A DNA stretch of 63,431 bases, filler included, from Octopus bimaculoides (GCF_001194135.2; 5 parts of 5 records of this genome joined end to end with filler, not necessarily neighbours in it); one strand, 5' to 3'; numbered from the whole stretch's first letter, positions 24,559-40,357 are shown. Notes: generated from the letters alone by a model not told the origin. Translations and numbers: made by a program.

Positions 24559-25266
24559 ACTCAAATTAAGTAATCAACTTTTTATACATACCCATACAGT
24601 TATAAATTCGACTTAAAATGCGTATATATATATTAATACATATCGACATGTATGAATATCTTTTTAATATTTTTAAAGATATGAATATATATATATATAA
24701 ATATACATAAAAATACATGTAAATGAAACCCATGTGGGATACATATAGAAAGAAGTGTGAGAAAAAGAACTGATAAAAATTATTTTCGCACCAAAACTAA
24801 GAGCGGTTGAGAGTTTCAATTAGAAGTTTCAATTATGAGGATGCCTTTCCTGATGAAGGGGACATTGCCCGCATGGTTTGTAAGATTTCTATTAATTTTT
24901 CTACCAGGACATGAACTCTGGAAACGGTCGTAGAAAGTGGATCTCCTCGAATTGTATTATATTCCTTATATACTATTTATACATTTAAAAAAAACACATT
25001 AAATTCTATGGATCTTCTAATTGAAACTCTTAACTGCTCTTAGATTTAGTACGAACAAAATCTTTATCAGTTCTTTTTCTCACATTTGTTTCCATATATA
25101 TCCCACATGGGTTTTATTTACATGTATTTTTATGTATATTTATATATATATTTATATTTTTCAAAATATTTTTTTAAATATTCCTATATGTCGATGTATA
25201 CACTCATTTTAAGTCGAATTTATAGCTATATGGGTATGTATAAAAAGTTGATTGCCTAATTTGAGT
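24559..25266. repeat. Diverged ~260-bp inverted repeat with 187-bp spacer
   Basis: Arms 24559-24826 and 25014-25266 (e.g. gagtttcaattagaag / cttctaattgaaactc; aattcgacttaaaatg / cattttaagtcgaatt). Confidence 0.9.
24845..24937 (+). ncRNA. Type I hammerhead ribozyme motif with ~64-nt stem II insert
   Basis: CUUUC-CUGAUGA ... GAAAC-GGUC-GUA-GAAAG: perfect 5-bp stem I and GUA triplet; the closing pair of stem II is mismatched. Confidence 0.65.
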
Positions 25267-29598: not shown

Positions 29599-31449
29599 NN
29601 NNNNNNNNNNNNNNNNNNNNNNNNNNNNNNNNNNNNNNNNNNTTAATTAATTAANNNNNNNNNNNNNNNNNNNNNNNNNNNNNNNNNNNNNNNNNNNNAA
29701 AAAAAAAAAAAAATAATAATAATAATGACTTCTGATTTTGGCACAAGGTCAGCAAATTTTGAGGGGAGGTGGTTGGTCAATACTATCAACTCCAGGTGAG
29801 TGGTATTTTATTTCATCAAACCAAATAGATAAAAGACAAAGTTGACCTTGGTGGAATTCGAACTCAGAGTTGGAAGAAATACCCCCAAGGCATTTTCTGA
29901 CATTTAACAATTCTGGCAGCTCACTAACAATAATCCTTTGTGGGAGAGGTGCAATCAATTACATTGATTCCAGTGCTCAACAGGTACTTCATCAATCCCA
30001 AAAGGATAAAAAGGTAAAGCTGACCTTGGCAGAATTTGAACTCTAAATATAAAGCAGGAATAAATGCTGCTAAGCATTTTGTCCAATGCATTAATAGTTT
30101 TGCTAGCTCACTGCCTTAATAACGATGATGATGATGATGATAATAATAATACAGTTCTGGTAAATAAAAATAATAATAATGATAAGCAGTGCTGGCAACA
30201 TGAAAAGAGCACCCAGTTTACACTGTAAAGTGTTGGCATTAGGAAGGGCATCCAACCACAGAAACCATGCCAAAACAAACACTGGAACACAACACAGTCT
30301 TTATAACATCAGATCCTGTCAACTCGTCCAACACATGCCAGCACTGAACATAGATGTTAATTGATGATGATAATGATTTCCTTTAAATAACAACAAATAG
30401 TATTGGGAGGAAAGGTGCATCTCTGATCATGAGCAGGAATAGTGGGGGAGCATCATAGCTATGCGTTGAGAGGAATTCTTAGGGATTTGAATAATTCACC
30501 TCTAGAAACAGCAGTGTTTCATTCATCAGCCTTAAACAAACTTCATTCAGGGACCTTTTGAGTGGGATGAGCTACTCAACTGTAAGAAGATTTTCAGTGG
30601 GTCCCATCTGCAAGGTTATGCGCTGTTTATCTTGATATGAGTTCACTGTGTCGCACACATATGGTTATGATACATGTGCCTACTGTACCCTCATAAGATG
30701 GGTAGGTATATTGGGTTCTATATATTTGTAACCCAGCGCCACTTTGATGGCATGTATTTCTCTCTCACTCAATAATAATGGTTTCAAATTATGCCACAAT
30801 ACCAGCAGTTTCGGAGTAGGTAGTGAGTCAATCACACTGACTCCAGTACTCAACTCGTGCTTATTTTATCAACCCCGAAAGGATGACAGGTAAAGTTGAT
30901 GGACAGAATTTGAACTCAGTATGTAAAGATGGACAAAATAATAAGCATTTTGCCTTGCTTACTAACATTTCTGCCAGCTTGCCATAATAATAATAATAAA
31001 AATCCTTTCTACTATAAGTACAAGGTGTGAAATTTGTGAGGAGGGAGTTGATTAGTGACCTCGGTGCTCAGCTGGTACTTAATTTATCGACTCTGAAAAG
31101 ATGAAAGGCTATGTCGATCTTGGCAGAATTTGAACTCAGAACATACAGGATTTGAACCCAAAATATCAAAGAACATAACTAAATCCCATAAAGCATTTTG
31201 CCCTGTGCCCTGCTATTCGCTGTCAGGTGAATCAATACTAATAACACTTATTTTATTGATATCTAGAGGATGATGATGGGGAGGATTATAAAACAACAAA
31301 GTAATTCAGATGTGGAATTTGAACATAGGTGGTATATATACTTTAAAACATTTGGATTGGTATGTTTACCAATTATGCTAATCAAAAATAGTTATTTTAA
31401 AATTAATGAGAATATTCTGAAATGAAATAAAGATGAGAAATTTATTTAC

Positions 31450-31491
31450 CTGCAGTAGCAACAACAGGTCCCTCTGTCGCTGGGATGAGAC
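31450..31491 (-). CDS. Short linker/stalk exon of the IgSF gene
   Basis: Poly-T acceptor tttttttttaatgtag| and donor GCAG|gtaaat; 42 bp, phase 1/1; (G)LIPATEGPVVATA continues in frame from the C2 exon. Confidence 0.7.
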
Positions 31492-32045
31492 CTACATTAA
31501 AAAAAAAAACACGTGCAGAAATCATGCAAGAACCATGCATCATATTTACAGAAGGATTTGACATGCAATAATTTGAGGAGGTGAAGCACAGACTTGAAAA
31601 TTTTTCTACTTTTTCATAAATTTTGAAATTCCAAAATGCTTCAAAATTTTATATATATGTTTCCTATTTTTGATAGCCACCACAAGAGCTAGTTCTTTTG
31701 GTTGGGTGGGGGCTTGTGTGCCTCATTGACCATGAGAAGAGCTATACCAGCAAAGTACAACCTGCTAGTAGGGCCTCCCACACCAGACAGGTCAAAGGAT
31801 AGAGGACAGACTAATATGGACCAACTCTTCCCAGAGGAAAAAACAGGTTTGCTGTAGGGCCAATGGCCCTACGTAGAAAGAAAGCAAAGTTACTGTAGCA
31901 TCAAAGACAATTCAAAATCAACAGGACCTGTGGGAGAGGAAAACAGGCCAGAGTCAAGAATAGTGAAAAAATATCAGCAATAGTTCATTCATGTTCTATA
32001 GGAAGCAAAGGGCTTAAGTATTTTTTAAATAAACTTATATTCATT

Positions 32046-32103
<58 letters not shown>

Positions 32104-32704
32104 NNNNNNNNNNNNNNNNNNNNNNNNNNNNNNNNNNNNNNNNNNNNNNNNNNNNNNNNNNNNNNNNNNNNNNNNNNNNNNNNNNNNNNNNNNNNNNNNN
32201 NNNNNNNNNNNNNNNNNNNNNNNNNNNNNNNNNNNNNNNNNNNNNNNNNNNNNNNNNNNNNNNNNNNNNNNNNNNNNNNNNNNNNNNNNNNNNNNNNNNN
32301 NNNNNNNNNNNNNNNNNNNNNNNNNNNNNNNNNNNNNNNNNNNNNNNNNNNNNNNNNNNNCTATAGTCACTTCAGTTATTAACAATTTTAACAAATTTAA
32401 CAATTTCAAATTGTAAACCTGATAAAATTAATGTTGTATATGAGTTGCACAGAGTTTAACCATTTCAGTACCAACCCGGCTGAAACCGGCTCTGGCTCTG
32501 AGTACAATTGTCTTGTTTTCATAAGTTTTGAATTTAAATCTTCCACAAAACATTAGTCACAATTTATGTTCCTAACACAAGCTGAATGATAACTAAGTTA
32601 TTTTACTAAATTCTTTGTTATATTTGAAGTAATTGAAAGAAACACAGAGCATCTCAAAATAAATACAGTAACGAAAGGGTTAAAGGCGCATCATATAAGC
32701 AAAG

Positions 32705-33210
32705 GGTTAGCCCAAAAGTCTGGGGTTTTTTTTGTTGACACTAAACTTTAAGCAATCTAATAACCAGATAACTTTAGTCTGTCCCTTGTGCATGCACACC
32801 CATGAAATACTTGACACTTCAACATTGTTCAACATGAACTTGTAACAAGAAGTTATATTTTGTGTGCTTGGTATCAACCTGAAAATGGACAACCAAGATG
32901 ACCATTATGAACACTTTGTCTTTTTATTTTAGAAAAGGCAAGAAAGCAGTGGAAACCTGCAGGAAGATATGTGCTATATATATGGAGATTATGTATGTGC
33001 CACAAGTGATTTTCAAGATTCTGATCACCAAATTTTTCAGTTCTCAATCTGGCCAGCCAACTGAATTTAACAGTGACACCAAACCCCATTAAACAACTAG
33101 AATGATCGCAGATATTTCCCAAATATTCAAAAGCTGAGATGCACTGCTTTGAATATGATGGTTTAAAGACAATTACTTTTACCCCATACTGATAAAAGGT
33201 TGGTTTCTTA
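32705..33210 (+). mobile_element. Mariner transposase N-terminal remnant
   Basis: MDNQ...FYFRKGKKAVETCRKICAIYG. Confidence 0.7.
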
Positions 33211-34258
33211 TTTATCCCTAATTTAGTTTACATTCTCTTTAGATATGCTATAGTTATCCTTGATTCTTTCTGCAAATTCACTTTATGATTTTCAATTTTG
33301 GAGTTGAACACTTTACCTCATTTTCCTAGTTAGTGTAATTTGAATCCTCACAAAAGCAACACTACTTTAAGGTTTGCTATGCTTTGATAAATGACCTTGA
33401 ATATTTTTTGTGATGATGGTTATTTTTGCTGGTTAGCACCAGTTCTGCCCTCAAAGATATTCCATCCATAATCATCTTGGTCTTTACTTCATGTAAAATA
33501 GGATCATATTATACAAATGCTCATTGCTTTTTAGATACTGGGGAATAATTTGAGGTAAATTGAGTAGCCCTTTCTAGTACATGAAGTAACCACACAGGGT
33601 ACACTCTGGGTGATGGTGGCTGTGGTAAAAATGGTGATGAGGATGATGATGGCAGTTGTTCTTTAGCTCCATGCTGTTAACTGATTGAGCAGACTTATGA
33701 TCAAAGCTGTTCTAGCCATGACCTCCCATTCACTTTTTCAGATATTGTGTGGAGAAGATGACATTGTGCAACATATCTTTCCTTTAAAACTAAAAAGGCA
33801 TGACTTGAGTGCTGTTTAAGTAGGCTGAGTGACCACACAGATGTTTCCATGATAGTGGAAGTGATAATGAAGGTTTCGTGGGAGTCAAAATGATGATGGT
33901 GATTAAACATGAATATAAATATATCTGTCCATGTATACATGGAAGCACAGGTATACGCATATGCTTATTCAAATATGTGCATAAACAGGTATTCATGTAC
34001 ACAGACATACATATATATATATACATACAGATAGACAGACAGAAACAGATGTTCACACTTGCAAAAAATGACCGCACATACATTTGTAAAAACAAACACA
34101 GACATGCATAAACACATGCAAAAGTATAAAAGTACACAAATTAGAAAATAAACTCATGCTTGCACACATGCATAGTGACAATGTAAGAGCTGCCTGCATC
34201 TATAAAAAAGAAACTTAGAGTAAACAATGTAACAGAAAGAAAATTTTGTTGCTTTTAC

Positions 34259-34567
34259 CTGGGATGGAGATTGTTTTGGAAAGGCTTTCTGAAAATACTG
34301 TACAAGTGATGGTCGTATTGCTGCTGTCTTTAATTGTTACATTGTACTTATAGTCAGACTGTACTGGAGTAATACAAGAGCTCCTGCTTGACACTTGTAC
34401 TCTGTCTATTGTCTCTTCCCCATCTGCATTGTTACCATGTTTTACAGTCCATTTGAAGATGACAACAGTTTCAGATTTTGCAGCATTTGCATCACATCTG
34501 AAGGTAGATATCTGGTTCTCCGCAGGAAATGGGTAGGGATCTTGCAAACTCTTTATATAAGATTTCG
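34259..34567 (-). CDS. Exon encoding an immunoglobulin C2-like domain (same gene)
   Basis: Acceptor catttctttgcag| and donor CCAG|gtaaaa; 309 bp, phase 1/1, open: (A)KSYIKSLQDPYPFPAENQISTFRCDANAAKSETVVIFKWTVKHGNNADGEETIDRVQVSSRSSCITPVQSDYKYNVTIKDSSNTTITCTVFSESLSKTISIP. Cys...Trp...Cys spacing fits an Ig fold, and the phase is compatible with the V exon. Confidence 0.85.
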
Positions 34568-34965
34568 CTGCAAAGAAATGTAATAAATTATATACCATCA
34601 TCATCATCATTTTACATCTGCTCATCAATCTGGCATGAGTTGGATACTAACATATGTAAATCATAAGACAATAATCCTCACAATATAATATGGTTACACT
34701 GTCACAAGCTACAATGTTCATGCAATATAAAACTAAAATGTCTGACATCAATCAAACTATCTGAAACGCTGTATTACAATGTGAGCAGCTGCTTCCTAGT
34801 TTTCAACTAACTTTATAGCTCTAAACCAAAGTGGAACAGAGTTTAAGACTATATCAACACAAGAACGACACATACACACCTAGTCATTTATGTATGACTG
34901 TGTACACACACATATATGGGCATGTGCAAATATGTATATATGTACTCATATAACATACATGTAAA

Positions 34966-35562
34966 TATTGGGTTGTCCGGAAAGTTTGTGCTGATTTTCC
35001 AAAAGGTTCTTCTCACTCAACTCATGTGGTACCCAAACATCGTAGCGATTTGTGTACCCAAGCTTTACCAGGTGCTCATGAACGACGGATTTTGATAGGT
35101 TGAGGCTTTCTGCCAATTCTCAGGTTGTGCAATGTGGGTAATTCTCAATTAATGACTTGATTTGGTCATCATCTGTAGTGGATGGTCTGCCTGATCACTC
35201 TTTATCAATAAGGCTACAATCTCCAGCTCGGAACCTTGCGGGCCACTTCCGTACAGTTCTTTCAGATAAAAAAACATCACCATAAACTGCATATTTCTTT
35301 GGTTGCTTGTGAAGCATTTTTCCCCTTTACAGAAAAAGAAAAGCATCAAGTGCTCAAAATGAACTTTCTTATCTTCCATTTTAAAGGGTTACATATTAAC
35401 ACAGGTTATAGGAACATAAACCTTCTTCCACAAAAAGATAGCTTAAACTATGCTCTAAATGGAGGTGTAGTCAAATCTTATTTTATAGACTCAACCATGT
35501 TCTAAAATAAGTCGAAAGGTAAGCTACTATAAATCGACACGAACTTTCCAGACAACCCAATA
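34966..35562 (-). mobile_element. Mariner element, internally deleted, both TIRs present
   Basis: TIRs tattgggttgtccggaaagtttgtg / cacgaactttccagacaacccaata; transposase start MEDKKVHFEHLMLFFFCKGEK. Lies in the intron ~400 bp from the C2 exon. Confidence 0.85.
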
Positions 35563-37214
35563 GAACATGTACATACACATGTACAATATCTCCAAATAGT
35601 ATATTAGTGGAAAGTCAGTCAAATGTCATTCGTTCTTCACTAATTTACAACCACAGGGCAACTTCAATTCAACAACACAAGCTAAGAAATTGCTTTGTCA
35701 ACTTTACTATTGTTTACAGTGACTAGTTGTTTCTCATCCATGGTAGCCATTTTCAGTAAGGTCATTGAGTTATTCATAAGTTGCATTTCTTGATTACAGA
35801 TCTTTTATCTTCTGCTGGTTTCTTGTTACTTCAGAGTGCAGCCATACTGAGGCAACACCTTAAAGAAATTTCAACCAAATGAATCAATCTCAATACTTTT
35901 TTCTTTTTCTTAAAGCCTGGTACTTATTCTACTGGTTTCACTTGCCAAACCCCTAAGCCACAGGAATGTAAACACACCAACAGCAGTTGTCAAGCAATGG
36001 TAGGGGGACAAACAGACACACAAAATCACATACATGTGTAAGACATATATTTATATATACAATGAACTTCTTTCATTTTCCCTCTACTAAACCTACTCAC
36101 AAGTCTTTGGTTGGCCTGAAGCTATACCTCAAGACATTTGCCCAAGATGCCACACACTGAGACTGAACTTGGGACTATATGGTTGAGAAGCAAACTTCTT
36201 ACCACACAGCCACATCTAAAGTTTTTATGATACATGTTACCTGTGCTATACATAAAGATATAAAGAAAGCTATTTAAGTACCTACAATTGTCAGATTTCT
36301 GAAATTTAAACAGTGAGTCATGTAGCTCTATAATACTGATAATGAAAATTTGGTCAATAACTTATGCAGGTCTCAGGTAACTGATAATGGACAGTGATTC
36401 CAGTAGAATCTCCAAACTAGAAATAAATGTCACTAATGCAATGAAATAAACCCATTAATTAAAGTTAACTTAGTGCTAGATGGTGCAGCAAGTAAGCATT
36501 ATTTTAAAATGTCTATTTCATTATTAGGCAATGTCAATAGATATTTCCTGGACCTTCAGGCAGGTCTTATCAGGTTGAAGGGTAACAGACAGACAAAACC
36601 TTAACAACTAATAATGAGTTCTAGCCTAGACACAAAAGCATAAACTCTTTGCTCGTTTTTGGGTAAGTGGTATGAAGAGAGTTATTTTAACACTTTTGTT
36701 ATCATATTTCTGTTGAAATACACTGACTTTGTTTCAATAAATTCTGAAAATAATGGAGAACTTAGAAAAATATCTTTGTCATTATTAAGCTGGCATTTAG
36801 AAGATAAATTAGCATGAAAGCTTGACATAAAGTTTTAATTACAACCATTTTAAAACTAGAGCTGGCAGAAGATGGGGGTCTCAGACAGGTGAGTATCAAA
36901 ACGGTTAAATTCAAACTTAGCACTTGTCTGATATTTAATTCCATCAAGCTCAGAAGAATGAAAGTCAAAGTTGACTTTAGTAGGAATTGAACACAAGATA
37001 TAAAGAGCCAGGACAAATAATACAAGTCTGATGCTTTAACAATTCTATTAATGCCCTTCCCTAGTAAAAAATATTGTAAGCTTAAATTCAAAGGCAAGAT
37101 TTTGGAGGAGCAGGTACAGTAAATTAAATCTGATCCCAGTATTTGCCTGGTATTACATTTTACTTACTCTTATAGAATAAAAAGTAAAATGTGACCTTCA
37201 TGGGATTCAAGGTC

Positions 37215-37815
37215 AGAACATGAAAAAACTCATGTTGTGTTGAATATGTAATGAGTTTGATAGAAATGTTACTGTATGTAAATGAATGTCCTTGCCCAAA
37301 CCAGTATAAGTGGTGGCAACATGATGAGGTAGCAAAAGTTCTGAGTTGGAAACTGTGTGAAAAGTGGAAGTAAGAGAGAGGTAAGACATGGTATTACCAC
37401 AAACCACAGAGAATGACCAACTTGCAAAATCCTGTGGGATTTCCCAATTCAAATGGACCAGATAGATGCTTGTGCATAACAAACTGGACCTCAAGGTGGT
37501 GGACAAAATATATCATGTGCATTCTGTAATAGATGTTGCATGTCCATCTGACTCATGGATAGTTACAAAGGAAGGCAAGAAAGTAGACGTGTACAATGTC
37601 AATCCACTTAAATATGGATTTAAGAGGATTGACTGTGGAAGATAAAAATAGTGAAGATAGTGACAATTATTATTAGGGCCTTGGGAACAGTATCAAAGGA
37701 TATTGAGTGGAATATAAAGAAAATGGGAACAGAGTGTCCAGTAGAGCTGTTGCAAAACATCTGCCTCCTTGGTAGAGTCAGTAGCATCAAGAAAGTACTA
37801 GATTGTGGAAGAGAA
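37215..37815 (+). mobile_element. R4/Dong-like non-LTR retrotransposon 3' fragment (restriction-like endonuclease domain)
   Basis: QHDEVAKVLSWKLCEKW...WYYHKP...KILWDFPIQMD...HNKLDLKVVDK...IDVACPSD..I..KEGKKVDVY...IIIRALGTVSK...LLQNICLLG matches the RHD / KILWD / PD..IDxxxP / K..KY / GALG pattern of RLE-type LINEs. Confidence 0.85.
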
Positions 37816-39019
37816 CAAATAGAGAACTGTATGTTACAGGTAGCCAGCCTACTACTCATGCAAGATTCCAGGAGTTCCAACAAAACCCCAAGTTAAAAGA
37901 TTAGTAACATTAATAATTCTTTCTGCTATAAGCACAAGGCTTGAAATTTTTAAATGAAGGGGCTAGTTTATTGCAGCAACTCCAGTGCTCAACTGGTTCT
38001 TATTTTATCAACCTCAAAAGGATGGAAAGCAAAGATGACCTCAGTGGAATTTGAGCTTAGCATGTAAAAAGCCAGAAGAAATATTATGCACTTTGTCTGG
38101 TACGGTAACAATTGTCAGCTCGCTGCCTTTCAAATTTTGGTGCAAATCCAGCAATTTTGAGGAAAGGGGAAAAATCAATTATATCGACTCCAGTGCTTGA
38201 CTGGTATTTATTTTAATGAGGTAATATTTATTCCCACTTAGCGTGAATGTTCTGTAAGAACAGACATTACTGTAGTAGATGCCATGAGAGAAACACTCAT
38301 ATAGGCTTTTGGGGCAAAATGCATGCTGTTTACAATGCTTGCTGGGACTCTACGAACACCAGCACTGAGACAACCAGATCATATGATCTCAACGTTCTTT
38401 GGTCTCATCAGTTCATCAGCGATAGATGCTCGACCACTAGAGATAACAGTGGCTCATCTACCTGCTAGCAACATATAGAAAATTGTTACCTTAACAGTCA
38501 CTGATATCACAATTAGCCTGTGAGCATGTTAAAAAAATATATATTAGCGACAGAAGCAGTATTGATACTGAGAGGTCTCGAAAAGACCAAAGTCAAAGTT
38601 AACCTAAGTGAGATTTAGGTTTAACATATACAGACTCAGAAGAAATGGTACTAAGCACTTTGTCAGACACATTAATGATTCTGCCAGCCTGCAACCTTAA
38701 GAAAAATAGTAATAATGATAATTTTTTTTCTAATTTTGGCAAAGGCTAGCAATTGTAAGAGGAGAAAGCAAATTGATTATATAGACCTAATGCTTGAGTG
38801 ATGCTTTAAATTAGTAATCCTGAAAGGATGAAAAACAATTGTGATTGATTTGAATAGGATTTGAGCATCACAAGGAAATGTTGCTTAACTCTTTGCTTGA
38901 CATGGTAATAATTTTGTCAGCTAACTGCCTTAAGTAGGATGACACAAATTTTGCAAGAGATTAAATTATATAAATAACAGAAATAAATAATGAAAATTGG
39001 AAAGGAAATAGAATCTAAC

Positions 39020-39328
39020 CTTTTAGAAATTTTGGAGAGGAGGTGGGACTGTTTGTTTGACATTCGTATTGAGCTTCATCCTCACACTGGAGGTTATCTT
39101 TCCAGCACTTCACCTTCTCACCTATTGGTAAATCACACTTAAAATTATTCTTTGTACTCTTGATTAAAAATGCAGTCTTGATTTTATTGTACTCTATCTT
39201 CACAACAGAAGAATTGTTTTGCATTAACTTGAACATAATCAAATTTGCTATTACATAACTACATGTTATTTCCATTCTCTCTCCAATTTTAAAACCATTT
39301 TGGGGTTCCAGGCTTGAAATTTCAATGG
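39020..39328 (-). CDS. Exon encoding an immunoglobulin V-type domain (internal exon of an IgSF gene)
   Basis: Strong acceptor ttttttctttcttacatatag| and donor AAAG|gttaga; 309 bp, phase 1/1, open: (A)IEISSLEPQNGFKIGERMEITCSYVIANLIMFKLMQNNSSVVKIEYNKIKTAFLIKSTKNNFKCDLPIGEKVKCWKDNLQCEDEAQYECQTNSPTSSPKFLK. Shows a B-strand Cys (ITC) and the D-x-A-x-Y-x-C F-strand motif. Confidence 0.85.
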
Positions 39329-39639
39329 CTATATGTAAGAAAGAAAAAATAGATTATCAGACAAAAACATTTTTTTTTTTTACAATGATAAGGTAATTAC
39401 AGTTACAAAACAATTATGACAAAGTTAAAACAGTAAGAGGAAAGGCAGAAATTAGAATCAACAACAGAAAAGAAGATAAACTAGAAAAGCACTCGGAGAG
39501 CGCAGACCTCCACCAAGCAGCTCATTTTTAAGATAGATAAGCGAGTAAAATTACTAATAGAGAAATGAAAATAAACTTTGGGAACAGCAATGCCATCATA
39601 GGTTACGTGGAAACGATTAACGTGTTTTCAAGGGAGATA

Positions 39640-40040
39640 ATCCGCTTTTCATGCTAGCATGGGTTGGACGATTTGACTGAGGACTGGTCAACCAGATGGC
39701 TACACCAGGCTCCAATCTGATTTGGCAGAGTTCTGCAGCTGGATGCCCTTCCTAACGCCAACCACTCAGAGGTGCTTTTACGTGCCATCGGCACGGAGGC
39801 AAGTCAGGTGGTACAAGCAATGGCCACGCTCAAAATGGTGTATTTTACGTGCCACCTACACAAGAGCCAGTCCAGCGGCACTCGTAACGATCTCGCTCGA
39901 AAGTCTTTACACGTGCCAGAAAGATGACGCTGGGCACAGGTGCCATCACGATTTTGCTTTTGCTTGCCCCAACAGGTCTTAGCAAGCGGAGTTTAGTGTC
40001 CAATGAAGGAAAGGTACGCATAAGTGGGCTGGCTACACCC
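39640..40040 (+). mobile_element. Interspersed repeat with RTE-associated tail motif (ggatgcccttcctaacgccaacc)
   Basis: The same motif occurs inverted at ~30215-30340 (ggcattaggaagggcatcc); internal repeated tttacgtgcca motifs. Confidence 0.55.
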
Positions 40041-40049
40041 CTGGCAGAG

Positions 40050-40357
40050 GCCTTGGATTTAGATCTCACTTGGCTTGCCGGGTCTTCTCACGCACAGCAT
40101 AATTCCAAAGGTCTCGGTCAGAAGTCATTGCCTCGGTGAGGCCCAAGGTCTTGCTTCACCACCTCATCCAAGGTCTTCCTGGGCCTACCTCTTCCACAGG
40201 TTCCCTCAATTGCTAGGGAGTGGCACATTTTCACACAACTATCCTCATCCATTCTCGCCACATGACCATACCAGTGCAATCGTCCTTCTTGTACACCACA
40301 GCTGATGTTAGGTTCAACTTTTCTCTCAAGGTACTTACACTCTGTCTAGTATGCACA
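40050..40357 (-). mobile_element. RTE-clade LINE 3' end fragment
   Basis: LREKLNL..SCGVQEGRLHWYGHVARMDEDSCVKMCHSLAIEGTCGRGRPRKTLDEVVKQDL..LGLTEAMTSDRDLW; abuts an assembly gap. Confidence 0.85.

Follow-up and report, generated by a model that had tools for sequence, protein, structure and literature searches.

A two-domain immunoglobulin cassette of Octopus bimaculoides from a fast-evolving family of coleoid cephalopods: a candidate recognition receptor

The window analysed here is a stretch of 63,431 nucleotides of Octopus bimaculoides DNA (GCF_001194135.2; five parts of five records joined end to end with filler), and between its positions 31,450 and 39,328 it holds three minus-strand exons of the gene LOC106883640. 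These exons encode two predicted immunoglobulin (Ig) domains, of which the first (D1) is V-like and the second (D2) C-type, followed by a short stalk. The gene is a member of a tandemly clustered family of two-Ig-domain surface proteins that is specific to coleoid cephalopods, and we give a probability of roughly 0.6 to the hypothesis that the three exons form the ectodomain cassette of a recognition receptor that is diversifying. The exons of this cassette evolve faster than the introns around them, which is a mark of molecular conflict or of a recognition system. To our knowledge cephalopods lack adaptive immunity, and we know of very few surface recognition receptors described in these animals.

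The three exons are real. Each of them combines a pyrimidine-rich tract and an AG acceptor with a GT donor, is in phase 1-1 and has one open frame only (Table 1), and the joined exons make an open frame of 219 codons, for which the chance in DNA of 63% A+T is 3e-7. Their junctions are identical to those of the RefSeq model XP_014790218.2 (LOC106883640, O. bimaculoides, “uncharacterized protein”, 204 amino acids), whose first residue is an internal Met (39275) and whose end, GK and a stop codon, is read into the intron past exon 3. The previous version of this model, XP_014790218.1 (243 amino acids), had a false first exon taken from the tail of a retrotransposon open reading frame (ORF) near 40250, which was dropped in version.2. 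The exon joins are matched as well by an intronless retrocopy in O. vulgaris with homologous joins between D1, D2, stalk and transmembrane (TM) segment. Moreover, isoform X3 of O. sinensis skips exactly the 14-codon stalk exon, and because it omits precisely those codons, this exon is a true cassette exon. A sequence-only reading of the same DNA had proposed these three exons, with strong splice signals, phase 1/1 and a single frame, in a setting of transposons; its coordinates proved exact, and transposon remnants do flank the exons. The Phe at the expected C-strand Trp position (Phe32) and the LQCEDEAQYEC ending that it pointed out are both present in D1. Its description of the gene as unannotated has to be abandoned, as RefSeq lists this gene as LOC106883640 and many entries of the family exist under the label “uncharacterized protein”.

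The O. vulgaris retrocopy (P0002, CAI9716300.1) derives from a TM-type gene and lies on a different chromosome, at ~165.12 Mb of OX597814.1, where it spans positions 9940-11115 of our segment L001 including a 5′ leader-like sequence, with the coding part at 10001-10912. Its ORF remains intact as far as the end of the TM helix; the tail that follows contains an in-frame TAA and has been altered by a frameshift or duplication. We regard it as a processed retrocopy of a spliced mRNA because it is intronless and collinear into this frameshifted, stop-containing copy of the tail.

The Ig nature of both domains is supported by structure prediction. AlphaFold (AF2), run on a 37-sequence family alignment, modelled the joined peptide as two all-beta Ig sandwiches, with a predicted local distance difference test score (pLDDT) of 93.6 and a predicted template modelling score (pTM) of 0.81; a run on a 3-sequence alignment gave a pLDDT of 43 and was discarded. 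In this model, DSSP places the strands of D1 at residues 2-7, 18-23, 31-36, 39-47, 52-58, (63-64, 68), 71-76, 85-91 and 95-101. With 9-10 predicted strands and a spacing of 67 between the B- and F-strand cysteines (C22-C89), D1 appears V-like, as extra C′/C″ strands and a long B-F spacing (~65-75 residues) are what defines the V-set. It contains Cys22 and the motif D83-x-A85-x-Y87-x-C89, with Phe32 replacing the Trp. D2 has seven predicted strands, two N-x-T sites, and Cys127, Trp142 and Cys191, which are all invariant. Its strand at 153-160 was aligned by profile, with a weak E-value of about 1e-4, to the D strand of C-kappa, a C1-set domain. D2 would be a seven-strand C-type domain, and its weak sequence matches point to C-kappa; a C2-set domain also has seven strands, but with C′ in the CFG sheet and no D strand. 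A Foldseek search with the model returned ~985 PDB matches at E<=1e-3, and those listed are two-Ig proteins; the best E-values came from Fab light chains (1.6e-7, with a template modelling score, TM-score, of about 0.36) and the best TM-scores from Ig1-2 of DIP-alpha (0.52) and from VCAM-1 (0.44). Sequence searches were much less telling: a single-sequence search of PDB gave only sub-threshold Ig matches, no V-set, I-set or C2-set Pfam matches appeared, and the Pfam “ig” model was found in only 2 of 19 family members (E<=0.01). The coleoid two-Ig family is too divergent for the current Pfam models. From the sequence-only reading, which had put forward a layout of V domain, C2 domain and stalk, the two Ig folds expected from structure prediction, the V-like D1 and the stalk are thus retained, and D2 may belong to the C1 or the C2 set.

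The family was delimited with a HMMER profile search of 1.84 billion representatives, which gave 36 clusters at E<1e-10; the window peptide fits the family profile at E=9e-116, in a profile alignment that includes this peptide itself. All named members come from O. bimaculoides, O. vulgaris, O. sinensis, Argonauta hians and the cuttlefish Acanthosepion pharaonis, and the further ones are unnamed transcript assemblies near the cuttlefish sequence. Every member is labelled “uncharacterized”, “hypothetical” or “unnamed”, and no description of the family was found among works on the LOC identifiers or on the cephalopod Ig superfamily (IgSF). Among the profile matches that were checked there was neither a gastropod FREP nor any other non-cephalopod IgSF protein, and nine weak matches inspected (E>1e-6) covered TM or low-complexity parts only. 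Within each Octopus species the members lie on one chromosome, often with consecutive locus numbers, and O. bimaculoides has at least 13 loci.

Full-length homologues in O. vulgaris and O. sinensis are type I proteins made of signal peptide, D1, D2, stalk, TM helix and tail, and the closest relatives of the cassette are the LOC115221679 genes of these two species (59-63% amino-acid identity). Three types of C-terminus occur in the family: a TM helix with a tail ending in GS[AT]V, a short hydrophobic terminal segment (...LILLLLVAAISR) similar to a glycosylphosphatidylinositol (GPI) anchor signal, and a Thr-rich, mucin-like stalk. The window peptide carries the features of the family, namely its eight cysteines, W142 and one phase-1 exon per domain, and its gene has an exon structure in common with the O. 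vulgaris locus described below. Here too the earlier proposal of a lineage-specific, fast-evolving mollusc IgSF receptor or adhesion/recognition molecule, possibly from an uncharacterised cephalopod family, fared well: the named members are exclusively coleoid, the family is undescribed and, as detailed below, exons outpace introns and dN/dS exceeds 1. The receptor role is putative.

Several gene models of the cluster are unreliable, including a scaffold-truncated model, a retrotransposon ORF taken as a first exon, fused neighbours and a retrocopy annotated as a protein. The O. vulgaris model CAI9737727.1 (P0004) fuses the D2 of one copy with the D1 of the next one. Two other O. vulgaris entries, CAI9737738.1 (P0005, 1202 amino acids) and CAI9737731.1 (P0006, 726 amino acids), show 4-5 D1(-D2) units in tandem, with Thr-rich, mucin-like linkers between them; these entries could represent genuine mucin-like proteins of several units or the fusion of neighbouring genes.

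The cysteines of D1 (22, 64, 74, 81 and 89) and of D2 (127, 167 and 191) are conserved in the family, except that C64 and C74 are absent together in decapodiform members. C22-C89 and C127-C191 are the canonical intradomain pairs, and the joint loss of C64 and C74 in decapodiforms points to a local pair between them. In the best PDB profile alignments, of weak E-value (1e-4), C81 and C167 align with Cys80 of the rabbit kappa light chain (V-kappa, in DLECADAATYxC) and with its Cys171 (C-kappa). These two rabbit residues form a known interdomain disulfide between V and C domains (PMC10038998). Since C81 and C167 are left unpaired and align with this rabbit pair, a D1-D2 disulfide between them is predicted. 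Such a pairing would also explain the extra Cys of the “CxDxxxYxC” ending of D1 without recourse to FREPs.

An indication of a recognition function comes from the rate and pattern of evolution. The cassette is collinear with positions 9464-25584 of L003, a segment of O. vulgaris OX597833.1 (43.67-43.73 Mb). In the comparison of the D1 exon with copy A of this locus, the exon is 78% identical, the upstream intron 92% and the downstream intron 83% (Fisher p=4e-4), and with copy B the corresponding values are 75%, 94% and 86% (Fisher p=4e-8). For the D2 exon they are 83.5%, 96.7% and 91.4% (Fisher p=4e-5). Exons have therefore diverged 2-4 times as much as their flanking introns. The ratio of non-synonymous to synonymous rates (dN/dS), estimated with the NG86 and LWL85 methods, is 1.94-2.17 for the whole ectodomain against the retrocopy (Fisher p=0.004), so that the measurement called for by the earlier note came out above 1 overall. 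For D2 it reaches 4.0-5.8 against the retrocopy and 1.85-2.3 against the spliced L003 exon, and for D1 it lies between 0.9 and 1.5, with a YN00 value, calculated only for D1 against the retrocopy, of 1.52. The synonymous divergence (dS) of D2, 0.03-0.11, is about equal to the divergence of the introns, which indicates that the excess in D2 is specifically non-synonymous and speaks for positive selection rather than for decay or gene conversion. Gene conversion from a divergent paralogue was considered as a cause of the excess of exon over intron divergence, and for D2 it is disfavoured on the same grounds.

The changes are not evenly spread. In four close TM-type members, only 16% of the columns are invariant in D1 residues 25-61 (strands C-C′-C″), against 63-67% in the A-B strands of D1 and in most of D2, and the divergence of the D1 exon is concentrated in its middle. 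The C-C′-C″ face is the usual ligand-binding face of V-type adhesion and recognition domains.

Another source of information is the cytoplasmic tail of the relatives. The long O. sinensis isoforms contain VYENN (a YxN motif), a poly-Pro run, DQLHYAELQL and a C-terminal GSAV, and LHYAEL is present in isoforms X1-X4. The cuttlefish-type, or decapodiform, gene has two alternative cytoplasmic tails (sources: L002, a Logan SRR24189505 transcript of 1870 nt; P0056/P0023; P0059/P0060). The short one ends in SGSTV, and the long one carries [IV]LYATV, PLHYAELEL, T[ED]YA[DV]I and a poly-Pro run, that is, two motifs with the consensus of the immunoreceptor tyrosine-based inhibitory motif (ITIM) and one with that of the immunoreceptor tyrosine-based switch motif (ITSM). 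LHYAEL, which fits the ITIM consensus ([ILVS]-x-Y-x-x-[ILV]), is conserved from octopods to decapodiforms. These motifs suggest that the founder gene could have been coupled to phosphotyrosine, SH2 and PDZ signalling.

Taken as a recognition receptor, the molecule would work as follows. D1 would present its hypervariable C-C′-C″/FG face to a ligand, on a D1-D2 unit that would be stiffened by C22-C89, C127-C191, the local C64-C74 and the predicted interdomain C81-C167 bridges. In full-length relatives, the tails would couple to SH2, SH3/WW and PDZ proteins through LHYAEL, VYENN, the poly-Pro run and GS[AT]V at the C-terminus. Diversifying selection would act on the ligand-binding part within a birth-and-death cluster, which also contains the forms with hydrophobic, GPI-anchor-signal-like ends and those with mucin-like stalks. 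By analogy, we infer a pattern like that of the “paired receptor” families of recognition or immune type, such as CEACAM and SIRP.

A number of observations weigh against the receptor hypothesis. The joined peptide scores 20.1 bits with the Pfam “ig” model (PF00047), below the cut-off of 21.8. The C81-C167 bridge is derived from alignment and covariation only, and the ITIM-type function from consensus motifs in the genes of other species, with the tail lying outside the O. bimaculoides scaffold. The dN/dS values are pairwise, from short sequences, and one of the comparators is a retrocopy with a broken tail. In D1, dS is also raised (0.24-0.41), and old (allelic) lineages or exon-scale gene conversion may add there to selection. 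A search of the 10.66-kb scaffold with O. vulgaris and O. sinensis segments (tblastn, E<=10, word size 2) found no credible signal-peptide, TM or tail exons.

Other observations of this kind come from the syntenic O. vulgaris locus, where the D1 exon (L003 9722-10045) is a pseudo-exon with a stop and a frameshift, and where no TM exon was found between the stalk exon and the signal-peptide exon of the next gene (L003 30870-30914). Furthermore, the protein collection searched contains no transcript-derived protein near-identical to the window copy, a weak sign of low or no expression. The O. bimaculoides cassette may then be a partial duplicate.

Two alternatives, both unlikely in our opinion and to about the same degree, deserve attention. 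In the first one, the protein would serve adhesion, junctional or homophilic, in the functional manner of CTX/JAM/CAR/nectin: D1 would hold cells together, GS[AT]V would fix the protein to PDZ scaffolds at cell junctions, and tyrosine signalling would be a secondary matter. The relatives do join a V-like domain, a C-type domain and a TM helix, they keep a class-I PDZ-type end from the GSAV of octopus to the GSTV of the cuttlefish type, and in structure the whole model matches best with DIP-alpha and VCAM-1, which are adhesion pairs of rod-like shape. However, no sequence relationship to JAM, CAR or nectin emerged from the PDB sequence and profile searches or from that of the 1.84 billion representatives, and homophilic adhesion proteins are normally conserved, whereas the coleoid family combines a dN/dS above 1 with a hypervariable binding face. 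Its hydrophobic-tail (GPI-signal-like) and mucin-stalk forms, which are devoid of cytoplasmic tails, fit poorly with such a role.

In the second one, the three exons would be a non-functional partial duplicate (D1-D2-stalk) of the birth-and-death cluster, and their open frames a recent leftover. The syntenic O. vulgaris cassette, with its broken D1, an 18-nt in-frame deletion in the stalk exon (L003 ~24921-24944) and no TM exon before the next gene, speaks for such a history, as do the lack of signal-peptide and TM exons on the scaffold, the partial RefSeq model and the failure to find a matching transcript-derived protein. The O. bimaculoides cassette, unlike the syntenic one, is intact: its three exons are open and have canonical splice sites, a combination hardly expected by chance, and it keeps 8 of the 8 family cysteines and Trp142. 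An exon change larger than that of the introns, with a dS of D2 close to intron divergence, is not neutral decay. The missing exons are moreover to be expected on an unplaced scaffold of 10,659 bp whose ends cut LOC106883640, given that related genes span up to 130 kb. The hypothesis of a receptor ectodomain is preferred.

The possibility that the protein is a label for neuronal wiring, similar to the insect Dpr/DIP proteins or to the expanded protocadherins of octopus and giving neurons distinct identities, seems quite improbable. Its top TM-score with Ig1-Ig2 of DIP-alpha, the mixture of TM and hydrophobic GPI-signal-like forms and the tandem expansion in Octopus would suit it, but no similarity in sequence to Dpr/DIP came out of the profile search of the 1.84 billion representatives, wiring molecules do not usually show a dN/dS above 1 when close species are compared, and the ITIM-type motif suggests phosphatase-coupled signalling. 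Finally, a secreted variable Ig-lectin of the FREP/CREP/GREP type, suggested in the sequence-only reading on the sole basis of the CxDxxxYxC ending, can be dismissed almost completely: this ending is the generic DxAxYxC of Ig F strands plus an extra Cys (C81) better explained by the interdomain disulfide, the full-length relatives have no lectin domain and terminate in a TM helix with its tail, a mucin stalk or a hydrophobic anchor signal, and no gastropod protein occurs among the profile matches whose origin or sequence was checked.

A separate idea, that the gene could contain mutually exclusive D1 exons, was raised by the LOC115221679 models, which differ in D1. It was rejected, as all five of the five O. 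sinensis isoforms have one D1 and a signal-peptide exon lies between the L003 cassettes.

The remaining features of the scaffold are listed in Table 1. The microsatellite in intron 2 probably caused the assembly break next to it. The flanks of the gap, 32970-32680 and 32061-31714, match contiguous O. vulgaris sequence (L003 23581-23847 and 24096-24430), no family exon was found in the O. vulgaris stretch that corresponds to the gap region, and all full-length relatives pass from ...SIPG at the end of D2 straight into the stalk. Because of this collinearity, of the lack of a family exon there and of the direct passage from SIPG to the stalk, the gap has no effect on the reading frame.

Among the repeats, the mariner/Tc1-type remnant of intron 1 is internally deleted and frameshifted; in Pfam it matches HTH_32 (E=1.2e-7) and HTH_48 (Mos1 transposase, E=4.7e-5), both slightly below their cut-offs, and its terminal inverted repeats of ~21 nt, read by eye, are ttgggttgtctggaaagttcg ... 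caaactttccggacaacccaa. The ORF upstream of D1 resembles the C-terminal tail of ORF2 of a non-long-terminal-repeat (non-LTR) retrotransposon, and Pfam gave no match for it. No Pfam match was obtained either for the broken plus-strand ORFs of intron 1, which resemble a conserved tail at the C-terminus of some retroelement protein. The repeats similar to short interspersed elements (SINE-like) of the window are also found many times in the O. vulgaris locus.

Table 1. Features of the LOC106883640 scaffold, in positions of the window unless L003 is given; a slash marks the exon-intron border.
Feature	Position	Strand	Description
Upstream sequence	39329-40357 (to scaffold end)	minus	Intron or flank; non-LTR-retrotransposon-like ORF tail; no signal-peptide exon
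ORF	~40120-40280	minus	...HWYGHVARMDED...GRGRPRKTLDEVVKQDL
Exon A (D1)	39328-39020	minus	309 nt; acceptor tttcttacatatAG/CC, donor AAG/GTtaga; predicted V-like Ig domain (joined-peptide residues 1-102)
Intron 1	34568-39019	minus	4.45 kb; SINE-like copies and mariner/Tc1-type remnant
Broken ORFs	37460-37900	plus	...IIIRALGTVSKDIEWNIKKMGTECPVELLQNICLLGRVSSIKKVL...
Mariner/Tc1-type remnant	~34960-35560	minus	In intron 1
Exon B (D2)	34567-34259	minus	309 nt; acceptor ttctttgcAG/CG, donor CAG/GTaaaa; predicted seven-strand C-type Ig domain, residues 103-205
Intron 2	31492-34258	minus	2.77 kb as assembled; microsatellite and assembly gap inside
Assembly gap	32104-32360		Intronic, within intron 2
(CA)n/(TG)n microsatellite	32040-32103		~64 nt; directly adjoins the assembly gap
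Exon C (stalk)	31491-31450	minus	42 nt; acceptor ttttttaatgtAG/GT, donor CAG/GTaaat; 14-codon stalk cassette exon, GLIPATEGPVVATA, phase 1-1; upstream of the TM exon in full-length relatives
Downstream sequence	29699-31449 (to scaffold end)	minus	Repeat-rich, SINE-like copies; no TM/cytoplasmic exon
SINE-like core copies	29832-29876, 30010-30054, 31104-31148, 36961-37005, 37181-37225, 38025-38069, 38589-38633		Core ...GACCTTGGCAGAATTTGAACTC...; 7 copies, one orientation throughout
Second repeat piece	30840, 31058, 37979		3 copies
Second D1 exon	L003 45693-45989		Intact; O. vulgaris OX597833.1

The nearest known system is LOC115221679 (XP_036366772.1 and its isoforms; CAI9737726.1), which has the same modules of D1, D2 and 14-codon stalk and the same eight cysteines, and at the intron level the O. 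vulgaris cluster shows 83-97% identity to the window. These are complete genes with signal peptide, TM helix and alternatively spliced tails, whereas the window copy is cut by its scaffold; their D1 is only 50-55% identical to the D1 of the cassette, and the strictly syntenic D1 of O. vulgaris is a pseudo-exon. With the FREP, CREP and GREP proteins the family has in common that they are mollusc proteins with diversified Ig domains, but it lacks their C-terminal fibrinogen, C-type-lectin or galectin domain and any sequence relationship to them, and is membrane-anchored instead of secreted.

The rabbit kappa light chain offers a parallel in its Cys80-Cys171 bridge, C81 preceding DxAxYxC and C167 preceding strand E in the coleoid peptide, although whole-chain TM-scores of ~0.36 denote a different angle between the domains in the model; the likeness would almost certainly be convergent. 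The CTX/JAM/CAR proteins resemble the full-length relatives in domain order and in their PDZ-type end, the GSAV of the latter recalling the -SIV of the CAR C-terminus. This layout of V-like, C-type and TM segments with a PDZ-type end is seen in the full-length relatives, the TM and tail exons of the window copy being off the scaffold, and the coleoid family differs by its lack of a sequence match, its other cysteine pattern and its very fast evolution.

The most suggestive comparison is with CEACAM and SIRP, fast-evolving vertebrate IgSF families in which the founder bears an ITIM and other members are secreted or GPI-anchored (similar tails are known from PECAM-1, Siglec and PZR). Like them, the coleoid family has an N-terminal V-like domain that diversifies under selection, is organised in tandem clusters with birth and death of copies, combines TM forms with hydrophobic-tail (GPI-signal-like) and tail-less ones, and carries [ILV]xYxx[ILV] motifs in its founder's tail; unlike them, it is a two-domain family with a predicted interdomain disulfide and a PDZ-type end, and no sequence homology between the two can be detected. 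By analogy, binding of SH2 phosphatases and an immune role are putative for the coleoid proteins. A bolder and only tentative proposal, which we consider doubtful in its full extent, is that the cluster could be an independently evolved cephalopod counterpart of the vertebrate paired receptors (CEACAM, SIRP, KIR), with an ancient ITIM-type/PDZ-end founder and a swarm of fast-evolving relatives of the TM, GPI-signal-like and mucin-stalk types, whose D1 would be driven by host-pathogen, self/non-self or gamete-recognition conflict, whose V-C disulfide would be convergent with that of rabbit kappa, and of which one cassette, intact and under positive selection, would lie in the window. If the receptor hypothesis is true, the family would open a concrete way into the recognition of pathogens, partners or self by octopus cells, and would be a clean case of convergence, in a lophotrochozoan, with the CEACAM/SIRP-like clusters and their ITIM-type signalling.

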